Positions 28,165-36,980 of a stretch of DNA of 64,000 nucleotides are shown in pieces. The first letter of the stretch is position 1, and each line of letters starts with the position of its first letter. This stretch comes from Bugula neritina (taxonomy: Eukaryota > Animalia > Bryozoa): positions 8,236,722-8,300,721 of the forward strand of contig OZ037766.1 in assembly GCA_964035545.1 (NCBI GenBank). The letters are read 5' to 3'. Position numbers and translations under genes: made by a program. The notes under the pieces are model-generated. The model ran no database searches, was not told the origin of the DNA, and saw nothing but the letters and a program-made list of their open reading frames with translations.

Positions 28165-29155
28165 GGCATAGTATTTCTAATGTTGTACCATCATATAAGC
28201 CTATAATATAGCTTTGTGTATGTTGAACAAGTCTTAGATTTGTGTTCAAAGTGTATAATATATTTATATCTAAATATTTTTATATTGATTTATTAACAAC
28301 ATTTAAATATAGAATGTAATTAAAATTAATCATTGCTTCTTTCAGCAAAATGATGAAATGAAGTTTTGCCAATATTTAGTTTTTCACCACTTGTATCCTG
28401 GCTAACATAAATCTACGCTTTGTGTTTTATTATTTACAAAATTGTTTAGCATATTTCTTACAATGGGTACAATGTATATAATTTGTTACACATGGTTCTT
28501 TTACTGCTAAAACAATCTTAAAACTTGTCATGTTTCATATGCTGTATATTATTTTCACAATTTTTTACTTTTTGCTAGGAATTATTATTAATTAAAAATT
28601 ACCTGAATGCTTTATAACAATCATTGTCAATGTCCAGAAAAATTTAAACTTCAAAAGAATATGTTGGTTTTCAACTTTTTATTCTATATAGTCATTTATT
28701 AACTATAAATATTACTTAGTAGTAAAATATAAATGCTGATAACATTTTAATTATATATCTACTATAAAATATTTTATTTGAATTAAAAAATGGGAAAATC
28801 AATTATGTCATCATAAACTAAAATAGATGTTTCAAACAGTATTAGAAATAAATTGCATACTAAAATATATTAGATATGTTATTATGATGAGATGTAAAGT
28901 TCTCTAATAAAAATAATAGGATGCGAGTGAGCTCTAGATAAAAATGCTGCTTTAAAAAATCAAGCATCAGAAAAAGTTATGTAAAAGCGGTTAATAAAAA
29001 GTCTTTGTAAGATGTTATGCAGTTTGTGATTGAGAAATATTCGATGATTGAAATTTATTTGAAATAAAATTGTTAATATGAGGTAAAATTGAGCATAAAA
29101 AGTTCACCAGTCAGAGCACAAACTATTATCATTTATGATGTTTTATACTTGTCAC

Positions 29156-32100
29156 TCACTTGCTTAAGTAGCAACTTTCAAAGTTTGTGAAGCAAACGGG
29201 AGGCGTTGGGACCGTCTCGTCTATTTCAAGCCACACAGTTTTGCTGTCTTTGTTTACTGAATAGCAGAAGTTCATATACTGTGTAAACGATGAGGATTCT
29301 CTCACAATGCTCGACACATCAGTTAGAAGTTCAAGTAACTTCACATTCGGTAACGGAGCATTGGCTAAGGCACCATTTCCTATCTCTTTGTCGTCCAAAG
29401 ATGTTGCTTCTGTTGCACCATGTTCAGATAAAATTTGATCATTCACTGATGTAACATCCTGTTTGTCCACATCCACAATATCTTGAGGAGTGTTACCATC
29501 GCTCATACTGTCTTTCTTTAGACTTGCCATATCAGTGACAGAACTTTCATTGGAGGTGACATTTTCTTCCACTACTGTCAGCATAGTCTCTTGTCTTGTT
29601 TGAAGATGGCTATCTTGGTTAATATGATATCTGTACAGATTTCTCAGGTGTTCTCTCATTGCCTTAAACATTTCACCTCGTTTGGACCTACAAAAACAAT
29701 AGTGGCGTCAATAGAAAGCCTAAATGAAATACTGAATCGAAGACATACAATAACTCATCATCAGTCACAAATGACCTCATGAATTATTTTGATATAGCCT
29801 TCTTACCTGCTGTCCGGCATTGTAGAGAAACAAACATAGCTGTTGAGAGATAAGTTTAAGCTTGGCATTGCTTTACGATTCCACTCCAACTCCAACTCTT
29901 CTAAAGACAGCTCGTCTTTCGTGACATTAAAACCAGAGTATGGCTCCATTTCAAACAGTTCATTACATTCCCAGTTCTGTTTTGTTCTGTTTTTCCGAGC
30001 AATGTTTCCACGACAGAATCCCAACAAGAAAAGCTTGAAATATACCAACAAAATTTACGTAGATCATATCAAACATTTAACAGAACCCAAACTGTATCAG
30101 ACATAGAATAGACATAAGAAAATTTTAAAAAATATGTTAGCAAATTTGCCAGGAATTCTTATGAGTGAAAGTTTGTACCATTATGTAGGTTACCTTGACA
30201 GTTTCTTCTGGCAGACTTGTGTTTAATGTATCAAAAAGACTCTGGACGCTGCACACACTACCATCATCGCCACAGATATTACCCTTCGAATCTCCATGTG
30301 ACATAATAGCCAAGGCTACCATTGTGCCATGAGTTGGCAACTCGCCAAATGCCTTCACTCTGTTAATCATCTCCGCTGCCGAAAGATCGACAGCAATTTC
30401 TACCTGTACAAAAAATTATATATTTCCTAATACCATTTAACTACGTTTTATGTGAAAAAATAGCATGTACTAATAAAAAGGTTTAAATCCTTGCAGCACC
30501 ATCTTACTTAGCAGAGTGAAATAAGCTCTTACTCACAACACTACCAGCCTAATCCTAAAAATGGAAAGTTGGATAGTGAGCTTACCAAAACACACTATAC
30601 AATGAACCACTCAAACCCATACAAATTGATGAGCACTTTCAGCTGTGCTTACATCTAAAGCACCTAAAGAAAAAAAGCCAAGCCTTTTGGGGGATAGAAA
30701 TATATTATTTTTCTGTTTTTCTTAGCTATCTGTTATGTGATAAAGAAAATAACTTGTGGAATGAACTCTTAGTAAGTTCTCTATCCAGTCTTCCATTTGT
30801 ATAGTTGGCCGATAGATACTGCTAAGAAAATTGTGCTACAAGAGTTCAAACTCAAAAATTGGCATGCTATTTCACACACATTTATTGTTTTCGTCGATTC
30901 AGCATAAAATTTCAATTAGATGGCAACATGATTTTGTTATTTTTTTATCGCAACAAGCATAACGTGTTACAAGTAAATAAATATGTCAGATAAGGTTTTA
31001 TTATACTCATGTTTCTATTATTGAATGAATTACCGAAAAGCCCAATTGAGTTTCCAACACAATAGATGCATCTTTTAGCTCCTTTTCATAATCAGATCTA
31101 TCTTTACTATTGCATATCACTAGCGCTTTCCTTTTGTCCCTTTTAGTTATTAGTAAATGATTCATTGCAGAGGAGATAGTACTTTCATCAGCTTGAAGTT
31201 GACGACCATAGGTAGAATTTATAGAAAGGCTTTTGACATCTGATCTCCTCAGCAATCGAGCTAATACAGAGTTAACATCTTCTTCAGAGTGCAGTTGAAT
31301 CACACCATCATCCTGACAACTGAATAAACACATCAGATAGAGGTAACAGCTGAGTTAAACCTATTAGGTACAAATTCATAAAAAGCAATCAGTCGAAAGA
31401 ACAAAGTTCTCAACTTTAACTAAAGCTAAGTCCTACTGAATACGTAAATGCCTTATGAGTCAGTTGCACAGCCTAAGAATGTAGTCATTATTAAAAACTT
31501 ACAACAGTTGTCAAAACCCAGCAGAACAAACAGAACACAAGCAAAACTCTATACCTAATATATCGCTTAAAAAATAAATTATCCTGAAAAATTTTAAAAT
31601 CAGTATTAGATAGAATAAAAAATAATATAACATGGAGAATATGTAACCTTGGCTTGTCCATGTGAACTGTAACCATCATATAGTCTGGATTTGGTGGAAT
31701 CAGGCATTTTTTATGTTCATCTGAATCAGACGTACAAAATATCACTGCCTAAAACAGATGTCAGTAAAAGTAACTTTACTTGTGATTAGAACTATGTAAT
31801 AGCAACTTAACTGGTATTTAGGCAAATAAAAAAGCAATACAAACAGAAAAGTAGATGTTATCATGAATAAACACCTTGGGTTGCCCACGCAGGTTTTCAA
31901 TTTCTTCAGCCTTCATACACTCCATTTTAGGAAGAGATAATCCTTGCGTCCCAAGAAGTAAAATTTCTGCTTTAGCAGAAAACTCATTGATGGCATAATG
32001 CATGATTTTCCAAGTTTGGCTTCGGTCACCTTCTGCTATGGTTGGTGGATTGATGGTGTCAACAAGAAAGCCTGAAAAATGAGCTTGATAAACATATGTA

Positions 32101-33692
32101 GGTGATACAGTAACTGAATCCATTGGTACTCCAAGAATTTTTTGTACATAGTAGGAAAGATCAAATTCCGTCTCCCGACTTCGATTCACCAATGATTTGC
32201 AGTTAGCCCCTTTGGGATTCTTCTTCTTCAACATTTGTTTCCTTTGAGCTAGAGGTAAGGACATGATGGTCTGCGCAAAGGCTTTTGGAATAGACATAGC
32301 TGCAACATGAAGTAAAGGGTTGTTTCCTTGATGGTCACTCTTTATCATAGTCTTACTATCACCAGTAATGTCTAGTTTCTCAAACAGTTCATGAAAGGCT
32401 TTACTATTTGGACTCCTGTAAGCCAGTTGATAAACATCATCTCCTTCATATGTTTTCTTAGCTAGGTACATGCTTATGTCATCATCGTCCTCATCATTGC
32501 TGTCAATGCACTCCTCTAGGCACGTTAGCAAATACCCAACTACGTCTACGCAGCCTCGCTGAGCAGCAGTTGATAATGAAGTAAACTTTATTTGATCCTC
32601 ACGTAGTATGTATTCTTTTCTTAAAGATGTGTCTATGCTACTAATGACAGCTTTTGCACTGTCAAGGTTTGTAACAAAATGAAGAGGGGTTCTTCTAGCA
32701 ATATTTTCAAGATTTAGCATTTCATTTGCAGTGGCCGCATCAAGAAAGTTTAGCATTGCTTGAAGAACATCACCCCTACCATACAAGGCATGGGTATGAC
32801 ATGCAGACTGCCTACTTACATCTTTATGTTTCAACAGTGAATTGAAATCTAAGTCCTTAATGCTTTGTGCTGACTCCATAAGAGCAAGTGCAGCAGGACC
32901 ACCCGTCACAACATGGAGAGCGGTTTCTCCTAATAAATCTAGTTTCAATATAAGTTCCTTGGCAAAACTTTCTATCGAAAGAAGATATTTAACAAGCTCA
33001 GCGTTATTTTTCATTGCAGCATGATGTAGCACAGTGTATTTGGGCATTCCCGGAGTGGTTAGCAAGAATTCTCGCACAAGTTCTGGAGTAGTACAGTCTA
33101 CGAAACATTTCGCAGATGAAACACTTTCAGCACAGTGGAGTGGGCTCTGTATAGAGTTGTTCAACAAGAGAGATTGATCGCTGATTTCACTCATCAAGTA
33201 GGTCACCATATCAACATTGTTATCTTTGACAGCAATGTGTATAGCAGTTTGACCAGCGCCATTGGTTAAAAGGATATAATCATCTCTCAAATTAGGGTCA
33301 ATGGCTTGAAGAAGAAGTTTAGCAATGTCGGTTGATGAGGTCATGTGAAGAGGGGACGAATGAAAATCATCAAGAGTGTACACTAGTTTTGGGCTAATGG
33401 TAGGAAAGCTAAGTAGATACTCCACCACATCTATTCTTTGGGCCATACATTGAAAATGCAAAGCTGTATGTCCACATTCGCTCCTTTTCAATAAGTAGCG
33501 TTCTTCATGAGGTGTCATACTATAGACCAAAGCTTCTGCAACATCTTTGTCTTGAGCAGAAAATAGTGGAAAATCTCCATCCTCAAATGGTTTTCTCCGA
33601 GCAGCATTATTTAAAAGAAATGCTTGTAAAGCCTCAACTTGCTTTTTTACTTTGTCCTCTTCTGATAAAAAGTGAATAAATGACAAATCCAT
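29156..33692 (-). CDS. Ankyrin-repeat / caspase (peptidase C14-like) fusion protein, 5-6 coding exons, ~1021-1057 aa
   Basis: Exons 33692-31875 (about 11 ankyrin repeats), 31748-31648 (probable), 31319 (or 31312)-31034, 30403-30194, 30033-29807, 29687-29156. GT-AG junctions, frame preserved. Caspase elements in order: KALVICN..DRSD (beta1 plus S1 Arg), LGFSVEIAVDLSAAEM, VALAIMSHG (catalytic His), KLFLLGFCRG (catalytic Cys), YVCFSTMPDSRSKRGEMF (p10 start), LLELLTDVSSIV..TQYMNF (p10 end). An acceptor at 33730 implies a 5' UTR intron. Confidence 0.85.
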
Positions 33693-36503
33693 AATGCAGA
33701 TAGCTTGAAAGATCCAGGTTGTCAACAAGCTGAAAATAAACAAAAACAGCACTAGAAAAAATATAAATTATTATTCTATGCTTAACTTCAACATTAATAT
33801 ATTAACATTATGGTTATAGTTAATTTTATGTCTCTCAAACAATTGGAATAAACTACTCTAATTCTGTAACATAATTTAACAACTATGCTGCTATAGATGT
33901 ATCTATTATCTAAGCAGGTTATTATCACTGATAATGTCTACGCTATGCTAATATATAATATACCAACTCTCATGCCGTATTATCTAGGACTCAGATTTGT
34001 CTTGTATTAGTGGTTACAGGTTTTCTTTATTTACATTTATACCTTGTTACTTCCCTATATAGCATATTATAATAGCAACATTAAGTAAACACATAGGAGG
34101 TTGTATATCAAGATGCAAGACATATACTTATTGCTGAAAATTATATATATATATATATATATAGTTAACTTAATAAAGGCATGCATACTTTCACATACGT
34201 ATAAACTTCTGTAACATGGATTTCTAACCTAAGGATTATAGCATTTTAACCATTAGCTAAACGACACTTTAGTTATTCTTACCTTTATGTACAGTTTTGG
34301 AGCTCTAATTAACAGAACAGCTTTTTGAACACAACTTGGCAATTTTGAAACTTAATCTTCTTTCTCTTATGCACGGGAGTCTGTCCTGATCAAAGGCTAA
34401 GCTCTATAAACAATATGTCAATATAGAATAAATCTACTATACATATATATTATATCATAATATTATACACGTATATTAAGAATATAAATGCATGTATATT
34501 TTGTGCTTAGTACATCTTTAAACACCCAGAGCTAGCATTTTATAAGAAGAAACCAAAGGTTCTAAAGCTTACTTACAGTGTTTTTTCCAGATACTAAAAT
34601 ATGTTAACAATATTACTACTGTAAATTTAGTATTTCTAAAATATATAACCTCCAGTTACTATTTTTCGATAAAATAGCTAAGCTATATTTGAGAAATAAA
34701 TTTGTGTTTGTTTTTAACTGGATTTCAAGCATACGCATTTAATATAATATATTGCAATATAATGCTTGTAGATTGTTGCTAAACTTCACTGCCTGCCTTC
34801 TTAAACTGCTGAGACTCTTTGTTACTATTACTATAAAGTTCATACTTTTACAATTTTAAAGATATTAGGCTAGTCATATATTTGATAGGGCGACAAATGA
34901 AATATAAATCAACAACTAGCTTTACTGTTTGCTTTGGTTACTACAATACATCTGATCTTACATTTCTGTTAAGACTAACTTGAAGTTTTGCACGTGACAT
35001 CTTTACAAGAATGAAGAAGGTGTAACTATACAAATAATGAATTATAAACGTAAACAAATTTAAAATAAATTTAAAACATCAAAACTAAAATTAGATATAA
35101 TGACTATTTTTATAATTAAACATCAAACTTTAGTTTAAACTTAGGCTTACTCTTAGTCCCAGAATGAAGCAATGCTCATAATCACATGGAGTAATTTTTG
35201 AATGTGATGTAAAGTAGCAATTAGTATAAGTTTTAAAATTAAAATAAGAATGCTAACAAATAATAACATAAAAAGTAAGCCGTAAAACTAAAAGTAAACG
35301 CCATAACGGTTGTATCTACTTTTAGTTTTAGTGGGATCCCGTGTCTAATTTTAGTGTAGCACTACTACTAGTAGAGTTGTAGTTCCCCAACAGTATTTGA
35401 ATGATAAGTCACAATTTAAACCACATTAAACTCATTTGGTCCAAAATTTTCTTTACCAAAACCATGGTAATATACAGTTTGTAAAAGTAAACCTAAAGAA
35501 TTGACTAACAGTAACCTTCAAAGCGAATATTCTCAAAACCAGGAAATAATAACAGGAAAAAGTATGCAATAGCAGATACTTGACCCGCTATTATAATAGA
35601 CCAAAATTTCACGAGGTGACGCTGAAGTGTTCTATTTCATTCTAAAATTCCTTCATTTTTCGAGCTGCAACCACAATCTTAAATGCAGATTAGTGGTTAA
35701 GCCATTTCTTGTTGACCCGCTGCTTAGAAACATTCCACGCCAGCATATGCTTGTTCAGTCACTATTTCAAAACCGCGTTTTTCTAAAACTGAGAATATTG
35801 TTAAATTAACCTATAACAGAAAAATTCAACATCTATTAGCAGGTGCTGCAGATTTCACACTTCATGTTTTAAATAATATATTATTACTATCCTAAAGTAT
35901 GCGAGTATACCATTTTTCAACATTATTTATGTAGTAATGCTAAAAGTAAAAGTTAACTTCTTGTGATAAATTTAAGTATATTTAGTCAGTTTAAAAATTT
36001 AAACTGCTACTATTACCATTATCAACTACGATGATATTATAATTATAAAGATAGTCATAGTTGTTATATTAGACACTGGAGGTTTTCAGATATGCTAAGT
36101 ACCTAATACGTAACTTATGCATACATTTATATTATAGCTATCTGTGTAGACTATGATATAAGTATAATGTATACTCTATATGTGCATATATGTTATGTTG
36201 GCATTGTACTATAACAGTTTGTATTGTTTATAGAAGCTTCTTCTCTTCAGTGACATTTGATCAGGACAAATTCTGGTGCATAAGAGGTAGCAGATTTTGT
36301 TCCACACCTGCCACATTAAGACAAAAAGGTCTTTTCTCAGTTACTCGTTAGAGCCCGAGCTCAGACGCTCGACATAAAGATAATAATATTACAAAAGTAT
36401 TGAGCATCGTTTAACTAAGTAGTAAAATGTTGCAATCTTTAGGCTAGAAGCTCAAGTACAAAAGTTCATATCACAAAATATTTATCTCATTATTAAGCTA
36501 ATT

Positions 36504-36832
36504 ACACACACACCACACAGACACACACACACGCCACACACACACCCACACACACGCCACACACACACACACACACGCCACACACACACCCCCACACACA
36601 CGCCACACAGACACACACACACACACACACCCACCACACACACACGCCACACACACACACACACGCCACACAGACACACACACACACCACACACACACAC
36701 ACCACACACACACACACGCACACACCACACACCACACACACACACCACACACACACACCACACACACACGCCACACACACACACACCACACAGACACACA
36801 CACACCCACACACACACCACACACACACACCA

Positions 36833-36887
<55 letters not shown>

Positions 36888-36896
36888 ACACACACA

Positions 36897-36965
<69 letters not shown>

Positions 36966-36980
36966 ACACACACACACACC
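36504..36980. repeat. ~480-bp compound (CA)n / CACCA / CGCCA microsatellite
   Basis: Visible directly; source of the three Cys/Val ORFs. Confidence 0.98.

Follow-up and report, generated by a model that had tools for sequence, protein, structure and literature searches.

An intact, transcribed ankyrin-caspase gene from a family of about twenty in the bryozoan Bugula neritina

The subject of this report is a gene on the minus strand of a 64,000-nucleotide stretch of the genome of the bryozoan Bugula neritina (NCBI GenBank assembly GCA_964035545.1, contig OZ037766.1, positions 8,236,722 to 8,300,721 of the forward strand), which we refer to as the window and whose positions serve as coordinates here. 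The gene encodes an N-terminal array of ankyrin repeats, a conserved linker, and a caspase-like domain in a single polypeptide. Its six coding exons run from 33692 to 29156 and join in frame, and a scripted splice check gave GT-AG ends for five of five introns, no internal stops, coding-exon phases of 0, 0, 2, 0, 0, and 2 in order, and 3,174 nt of coding sequence, equivalent to 1,057 codons plus the stop. In the list of open reading frames (ORFs) the same region appears as a 644-residue open frame at 31818–33752 and a scatter of short ORFs with caspase motifs at lower coordinates. The initial annotation, made from the letters of the sequence, had already joined these pieces into six exons encoding ~1,050 residues, and its coordinates, including the junction at 31875, proved exact, the actual product being 1,057 residues long. 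Neither a signal peptide nor a transmembrane stretch is evident by eye in that product, and the protein is therefore probably cytosolic.

This gene model is carried by transcripts. The stretch is contained in 19 public runs, four of which (X1, X2, X7, and X9) were aligned to 28700–34600. In run X9 a single RNA contig of 3,241 nt spans all five predicted joints and a sixth joint from a 5′ untranslated region (5′UTR) exon, in blocks at 34370–34283, 33729–31874, 31747–31648, 31319–31031, 30400–30194, 30033–29805, and 29685–29214. Its coding joints skip 126, 328, 630, 160, and 119 nt, and every joint of the contig has CT..AC ends on the plus strand and at least 88 letters on either side. Contigs of run X7, which comes from a different study and is labelled metagenomic RNA-Seq, show five of the six joints, and the DNA-type runs X1 and X2 show none of them, being unspliced across the introns. 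The 5′UTR exon (34283–34370, minus strand, its 5′ end being a minimum) is spliced to 33729, with 553 nt skipped between CT..AC ends in record 25 of X9 and record 22 of X7. No ATG is found when the sequence of this exon is read, and because an in-frame TAA lies at its 3′ end, just upstream of the ATG at 33692, that ATG is the start codon. A processed retrocopy is not the source of the spliced contigs, since there is only one fully matching locus in the genome: whole-genome searches with the tail of exon 1 and with exon 4 each returned a single copy at 100% identity. The RNA contigs, which are ~96–97% identical to the window, originate in a sibling lineage or haplotype. The locus holds a single intact gene, and it is transcribed.

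These data bear directly on whether the locus might instead hold two separate genes, one for an ankyrin protein and one for a caspase with a short prodomain, that only appear to be joinable in frame. Prokaryote-style gene callers applied to metagenome contigs do report the ankyrin ORF by itself (P0001). However, a single RNA contig runs from the UTR exon through the ankyrin exon and every caspase exon, the same joints are seen in a second study, and the order of the exons recurs at 18 or more other sites. The initial annotation had held that the ankyrin exon continues into the caspase exons and does not end at 31818 as a gene of its own, and the RNA contigs that cross the 31875 junction bear this out. 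The two-gene reading is excluded by these contigs across the joints, and we consider it improbable in the extreme.

The comparison between lineages yielded several further observations. Record 20 of X7 (31292–31677) is unspliced through intron 2 and has lower depth than the spliced contigs; it is either a retained intron or pre-mRNA, or DNA carried in the library. At 29183 the sibling-lineage RNA and DNA contigs (X7 and X9) have a deletion of 1 nt that is absent from the near-identical run X1. Because this shift changes only the last eight residues, with a stop three codons earlier, the C-terminal tail past the conserved block of exon 6 is free to vary. At 29919–29922, within the inter-subunit linker encoded by exon 5, the sibling-lineage sequence has lost 1 nt and gained 1 nt at a spacing of three bases, changes that compensate each other and keep the frame. 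Finally, L001, a Joint Genome Institute (JGI) metagenome contig from the sibling lineage that is 95% identical at the protein level, has at its positions 1677/1678 no counterpart of 126 nt of the window (34282–34407), including the 5′UTR exon, with the break falling exactly at the donor. The exon is thus missing from L001 yet present in RNA contigs of similar divergence, which may reflect either a presence/absence polymorphism or an artefact of assembly.

Exon 1 (31875–33729, minus strand), delimited by the ORF list, the splice check, and the RNA contigs, consists of 37 nt of 5′UTR followed by codons 1–606, and most of it encodes an ankyrin-repeat solenoid (32178–33569, residues ~42–505). Its Pfam matches are to Ank_2 (E 6.6e-28, 97.6 bits against a cut-off of 27.3) and Ank (E 9.9e-24), as well as to Ank_3, Ank_4, and Ank_5. 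The repeats are arranged as double units of ~72 residues, each made of one canonical and one variant repeat. An AlphaFold model of exon 1 built on the paralogue alignment has a mean predicted local distance difference test (pLDDT) score of 78.6, rising above 90 over residues ~80–390, and forms a continuous solenoid of helix pairs over residues ~42–505, for which the best Foldseek matches are ankyrin-1, the 24 repeats of AnkB, NOMPC, and TRPA1 (E ~1e-11). The solenoid of tandem 33-residue helix-turn-helix repeats by which ankyrin repeat proteins are recognized is therefore found by Pfam, in the AlphaFold model, and by Foldseek, and the ~11 N-terminal repeats counted by the initial annotation agree with the 11 ‘xxLH’ motifs in exon 1 and with the ~11–12 repeats that these three methods give.

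The array is separated from the caspase-like domain by a linker of ~230 residues that contains blocks conserved across the family of paralogues described below. The first of these is the tail of exon 1 (31875–32177, minus strand, residues ~506–606, ending in the ..QPK donor), a non-ankyrin segment conserved in 18 paralogues at 21–35% identity (alignment A3), which has no Pfam match and is helical with low confidence in the AlphaFold model. The second is exon 2 (31648–31748, minus strand), a linker exon of only 101 nt (phase 0 to 2) whose PP.P(D/E)(Y/F) core is invariant and which is present at 19 paralogous sites (alignment A6). The third, with a conserved ‘..NST..’ block, is the first half of exon 3 (31034–31319, minus strand). 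A Pfam scan of exon 1, its tail, and exon 3 found no CARD, DED, or Death domain at E values up to 1–10, exon 2 lying outside the scan, and the description of the protein as independent of the death fold accordingly holds at the Pfam level.

Exons 3 to 6 map in order onto a caspase domain. The second half of exon 3 corresponds to the start of the p20 subunit (strand 1, ‘ALVICN’, and helix 1), and exon 4 (30194–30403, minus strand) to the p20 core with the putative catalytic His in SHG (codon 30298–30296). Exon 5 (29807–30033, minus strand) holds the active-site strand with the catalytic Cys in GFCRG (codon 30015–30013) and an inter-subunit linker of ~50 residues, and would supply the start of p10 (..CFSTMPDS). 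The remainder of p10 is assigned to exon 6 (29156–29687, minus strand, stop codon 29158–29156), which also encodes an insert of ~100 residues rich in Ser, Asp, and Glu and a conserved ‘LLTDV..RE...Y.N.CY’ block.

The caspase searches were run exon by exon or with one family profile per exon. Exon 4 by itself matches Pfam Peptidase_C14 (PF00656), the family to which caspases (MEROPS C14A) belong, with E 0.009 and 16.1 bits, below the gathering cut-off of 21.4, and against the Protein Data Bank (PDB) all 30 of its 30 best phmmer matches are caspases, the match to caspase-2 (E 6.5e-4) aligning MSHG with LSHG. The exon 4 profile built from 20 paralogues matches CED-3 (5.4e-10) and caspase-2 (3e-9), and in hhalign it aligns to residues 152–215 of a barnacle caspase-2 profile with a probability of 98% (E 1e-13). 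The family profile of the second half of exon 3 (A9) aligns to residues 109–155 of the same barnacle profile (E 2e-4). In paralogue L004, where exons 3 and 4 lie in one ORF, Pfam Peptidase_C14 is matched at profile positions 1–111 with 34.7 bits, above the 21.4 cut-off. A caspase p10 subunit is marked by an STxPG..S.R strand, a GSWF helix, and a C-terminal strand. Further along, the C-terminal block of exon 5 (..CFSTMPDS) aligns to the expected segment, residues 268–278, of caspase-2 (‘DIYITYSTIPG’; E 1.9e-4, probability 48%). Pfam gave no caspase match for exons 3, 5, and 6 searched separately, exon 5 had none in the PDB either by itself or as a family profile, and the conserved block of exon 6 had no significant match to the caspase-2 profile. 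Judged by these profiles, statistical support covers only the N-terminal half of the domain. The initial annotation had spoken of a complete caspase fold and of a C-terminal region that should match Peptidase_C14. The SHG His, the CRG Cys, and the resemblance of the N-terminal half to caspases all stand, whereas the p10 half is recognized by motifs and by its order along the domain; likewise, the region is caspase-like by PDB, profile, and L004 comparisons, but the match of this copy to Peptidase_C14 is weak and below the cut-off.

The catalytic dyad is conserved within the family. SHG, CRG, and T.PDS are each invariant in 20 of 20 copies, the ‘LLTDV..RE...Y.N.CY’ block of exon 6 is likewise present in 20 of 20 (alignment A4) with much of it invariant, and the Cys of GFCRG lies seven residues into exon 5, after a ..VK/..PK donor, which is the position of KPK-LFFIQACRG in caspases. 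The Gln of the QACRG motif helps to form the Asp-binding S1 pocket of caspases. The present copy has Gly at this position, 18 of the 20 copies have Ser, and one has Cys; because the Gln is replaced, cleavage after Asp (P1 = Asp) cannot be assumed. The p10 insert of ~100 residues is acidic and Ser-rich. At least 184 matches to Peptidase_C14 occur in the whole genome, and the absence of this locus from the 150 that are listed shows how divergent it is; the caspase domain of this copy is very divergent.

An alternative is that the protein has little or no catalytic activity and serves as a scaffold, a pseudo-caspase like cFLIP that would pair with other caspases of the expanded repertoire and regulate them while its ankyrin array recruits partners. 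The absence of the QACRG Gln, the long inserts in the inter-subunit linker and in p10, and the divergence that keeps the locus out of the 150 listed Peptidase_C14 matches would all suit such a role. We nevertheless think it improbable, since the invariance of the His, of the Cys, and of the R and G that follow the Cys in 20 of 20 copies is hard to explain without catalysis.

The gene is also constrained between lineages. Compared with L001, the exons are 96.5–99% identical without gaps (96.5% for exon 1), and the introns are ~90% identical and gapped. For exon 1 the ratio of nonsynonymous to synonymous substitution rates (dN/dS) is 0.167, with values of 0.16–0.18 in the repeat part and the tail alike. 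Exon 2 has 100% amino-acid identity, and the read-through past each donor diverges immediately. Purifying selection acts on this copy.

We find that about 20 ankyrin-caspase genes in the Bugula neritina genome form a lineage-specific family, of which this gene is a member. In the window's own genome (216 Mb in 321 contigs), a search with the exon 1 tail gave 16 further matches and one with exon 4 gave 19, and the two sets pair on the same strand, mostly 2–3 kb and at most ~7 kb apart. When 19 stretches were fetched and searched by tblastn with each exon, the exon 1 tail and exons 4, 5, and 6 were found in the same order in 18, one stretch (L021) overlapping another (L020), and exons 2 and 3 of the paralogues were recovered by further searches. 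All nine of the large upstream ORFs that were scanned are ankyrin arrays (Ank_2 E 1e-26 to 1e-152), and the open ankyrin frames of the paralogues vary in length between 491 and more than 3,000 residues, with 2,453 residues at L008 and 3,025 residues at C6:3.07 Mb. The initial annotation had regarded a long ankyrin prodomain as outside the textbook architectures. Unusual it is, but it has already been reported in proteins named ANK-caspases (PMC11463336), and with about 20 genes in this genome it is not a one-off.

In the trees built from exon 4 and from exon 5, the present copy falls outside a main clade of 15 sites and groups with or beside four other dispersed, long-branched members (L004, L005, L006, and L017). 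Members of the main clade lie mostly in two clusters on contig C8, at 7.33–7.58 Mb and 8.69–8.71 Mb, some of them on opposite strands a few kb apart. L004 has exons 3 and 4 in a single ORF, so that introns have been lost within the family. In the same paralogue (L004 3847–5600, or C1:63846–65599) the introns between the ankyrin and caspase parts are filled with a short tandem repeat whose in-frame reading is ‘YHITLYHTIL...’. On the metagenome contig L003 (7030–11662) three consecutive ankyrin ORFs of 233, 393, and 553 residues lie on one strand together with two blocks resembling the exon 1 tail, and this run is probably a tandem pair of family members.

One possible reading of the protein is as a death protease with a developmental or housekeeping role, in which the array anchors the caspase to a cellular structure or substrate, with no sensing of ligands or pathogens. 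It could act, for instance, during larval metamorphosis or when feeding polypides are cyclically broken down, as they are in bryozoans. This is consistent with a single dispersed gene that falls outside the main 15-site clade of paralogues, is under purifying selection over its whole ankyrin exon (dN/dS 0.16–0.18 in both parts), and is present in RNA assemblies from two unrelated studies, and it is consistent also with the top structural matches, ankyrins and NOMPC arrays, being anchoring scaffolds. A family of about 20 members with arrays of ~490 to more than 3,000 residues is, however, a pattern more typical of recognition families, and we regard anchoring as possible but on the unlikely side.

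Based on these data we put forward, with moderate confidence, the proposal that the locus is an intact ankyrin-caspase gene of a family of about 20 members in which the ankyrin array takes the place of a CARD or DED as a platform that controls the protease. Initiator caspases are activated by induced proximity on a platform. By analogy, the array that stands in place of a CARD or DED prodomain would serve as a platform for binding proteins or ligands. Once it engages a partner or ligand, or becomes clustered on a scaffold, two caspase domains would come into contact or an auto-inhibited one would be released. Proteolysis would then be switched on, much as it is by proximity in initiator caspases.

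Several points weigh against this proposal. The RNA evidence comes from a sibling lineage that is ~96–97% identical and not from the sequenced individual. No single exon of this copy passes the Pfam Peptidase_C14 cut-off, exon 4 coming nearest in the sense that it reaches 16.1 of 21.4 bits, and the p10 end has no significant match, so that its assignment follows from order and motifs. With the S1-pocket Gln missing and ~100 residues inserted in p10, proteolytic activity and its specificity are putative. Lastly, we infer both a binding partner for the array and its regulation of the protease, each of which is plausible.

A more far-reaching version of the hypothesis is that the bryozoan ankyrin-caspases are one-chain sensor-proteases that arose independently of the flatworm ones, in which variable arrays recognize non-self or danger ligands directly and fire a caspase of altered specificity, and in which exon 2 and the first half of exon 3 could be the relic of a regulatory pseudo-subunit derived from a duplicated C-terminal half of a caspase. 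A parallel for such direct sensing of ligands can be drawn with NLRs and with fungal ankyrin-type receptors. In the paralogues exon 2 reads IAVIQS...PPGPDYLILS, resembling a caspase active-site strand that lacks its Cys and then a p10-like strand. Exon 3 has ..VNSTLNKRY.., and its first half closes with a stretch that resembles the C-terminal strand of caspases. The intron phases of exon 2 (0 to 2) are also those of exon 5. In profile-profile comparisons, however, the probability was below 1% for the exon 1 tail against exon 4 and caspase-2, for exon 2 against caspase-2 and exon 5, and for the first half of exon 3 against caspase-2. The motifs are suggestive, but a dead half-caspase module is not supported by the profiles, and in AlphaFold the exon 1 tail is helical with low confidence. 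Taken as a whole, we consider this extended version doubtful, and rather unlikely.

Caspases are normally switched on via death-fold adaptors, and if our proposal of the array as a controlling platform is true, a ligand-binding repeat solenoid wired directly to a protease would reach cell death or immune signalling by a simpler path that needs no adaptor. The expansion of the family in a colonial animal with symbionts provides a setting in which the evolution of such receptors can be studied, and the locus described here is a transcript-verified, compact, and constrained member that, at 1,057 residues, is small enough to express and is practical for biochemistry.

It should be noted that the window also contains, at 36504–36979, an (AC)n microsatellite of ~249 copies, which explains three overlapping ORFs of 166–176 residues and the strong GC skew of the bin in which it lies.

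The known proteins closest to this gene in architecture are the ANK-caspases, and for those of Schistosoma the source paper is said to be Lee et al. 2014. Ankyrin repeats lie N-terminal to p20 and p10 in one polypeptide in the ANK-caspases, and this is the arrangement of the present gene. The name was given by Horkan et al. (Genome Biol Evol 2024; PMC11463336; preprint 10.1101/2023.12.11.571055), according to whom such proteins were first identified in Schistosoma and occur only in parasitic flatworms, except for one in the annelid Alitta virens, the flatworm clade being sister to the DED-caspases; bryozoans are absent from the sampling of that study. Our literature search for ankyrin-caspases of bryozoans or sponges found none. 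The bryozoan protein and those of flatworms and A. virens share a long ankyrin prodomain that replaces the CARD or DED, a lophotrochozoan host, and a function that is equally conjectural. In contrast to the flatworm clade, with its sister relationship to DED-caspases, the bryozoan gene best matches the CED-3 and caspase-2 types, and it differs further in being one of about 20 paralogues, in its conserved linker exons, and in its S/G-x-CRG active site. A search of 1.84 billion representatives with the p20 of a paralogue gave 14 hits, consisting of 13 fragments (78–147 residues), two of which were looked up and come from JGI and European Nucleotide Archive (ENA) metagenome contigs, and one barnacle protein, a CARD-containing caspase-2-like protein that is the nearest named one. 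Among these 14 hits there was no long flatworm-like protein and no ankyrin-caspase from another animal. These comparisons suggest that the bryozoan family is probably not part of the flatworm ANK-caspase clade and likely had a separate origin.

The death-fold initiator caspases caspase-2, caspase-9, and CED-3 are the closest sequence relatives of the p20 half, and they resemble the bryozoan protein in the His-Cys dyad, in the long prodomain, and in the linker between p20 and p10. In contrast to them, the bryozoan protein has no CARD, its S1-pocket Gln is replaced, its p10 carries the insert of ~100 residues, and its prodomain, a repeat solenoid, could bind ligands themselves instead of an adaptor. 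Ankyrins, NOMPC, and TRPA1 share the solenoid fold of residues ~42–505 (Foldseek E ~1e-11, alignments of 420–560 columns) but are only 15–20% identical to it, and in the bryozoan protein the solenoid is followed by a caspase and not by a ZU5, UPA, death, or channel domain. With the present gene, the range of the ANK-caspase architecture extends beyond parasitic flatworms and one annelid to a bryozoan.

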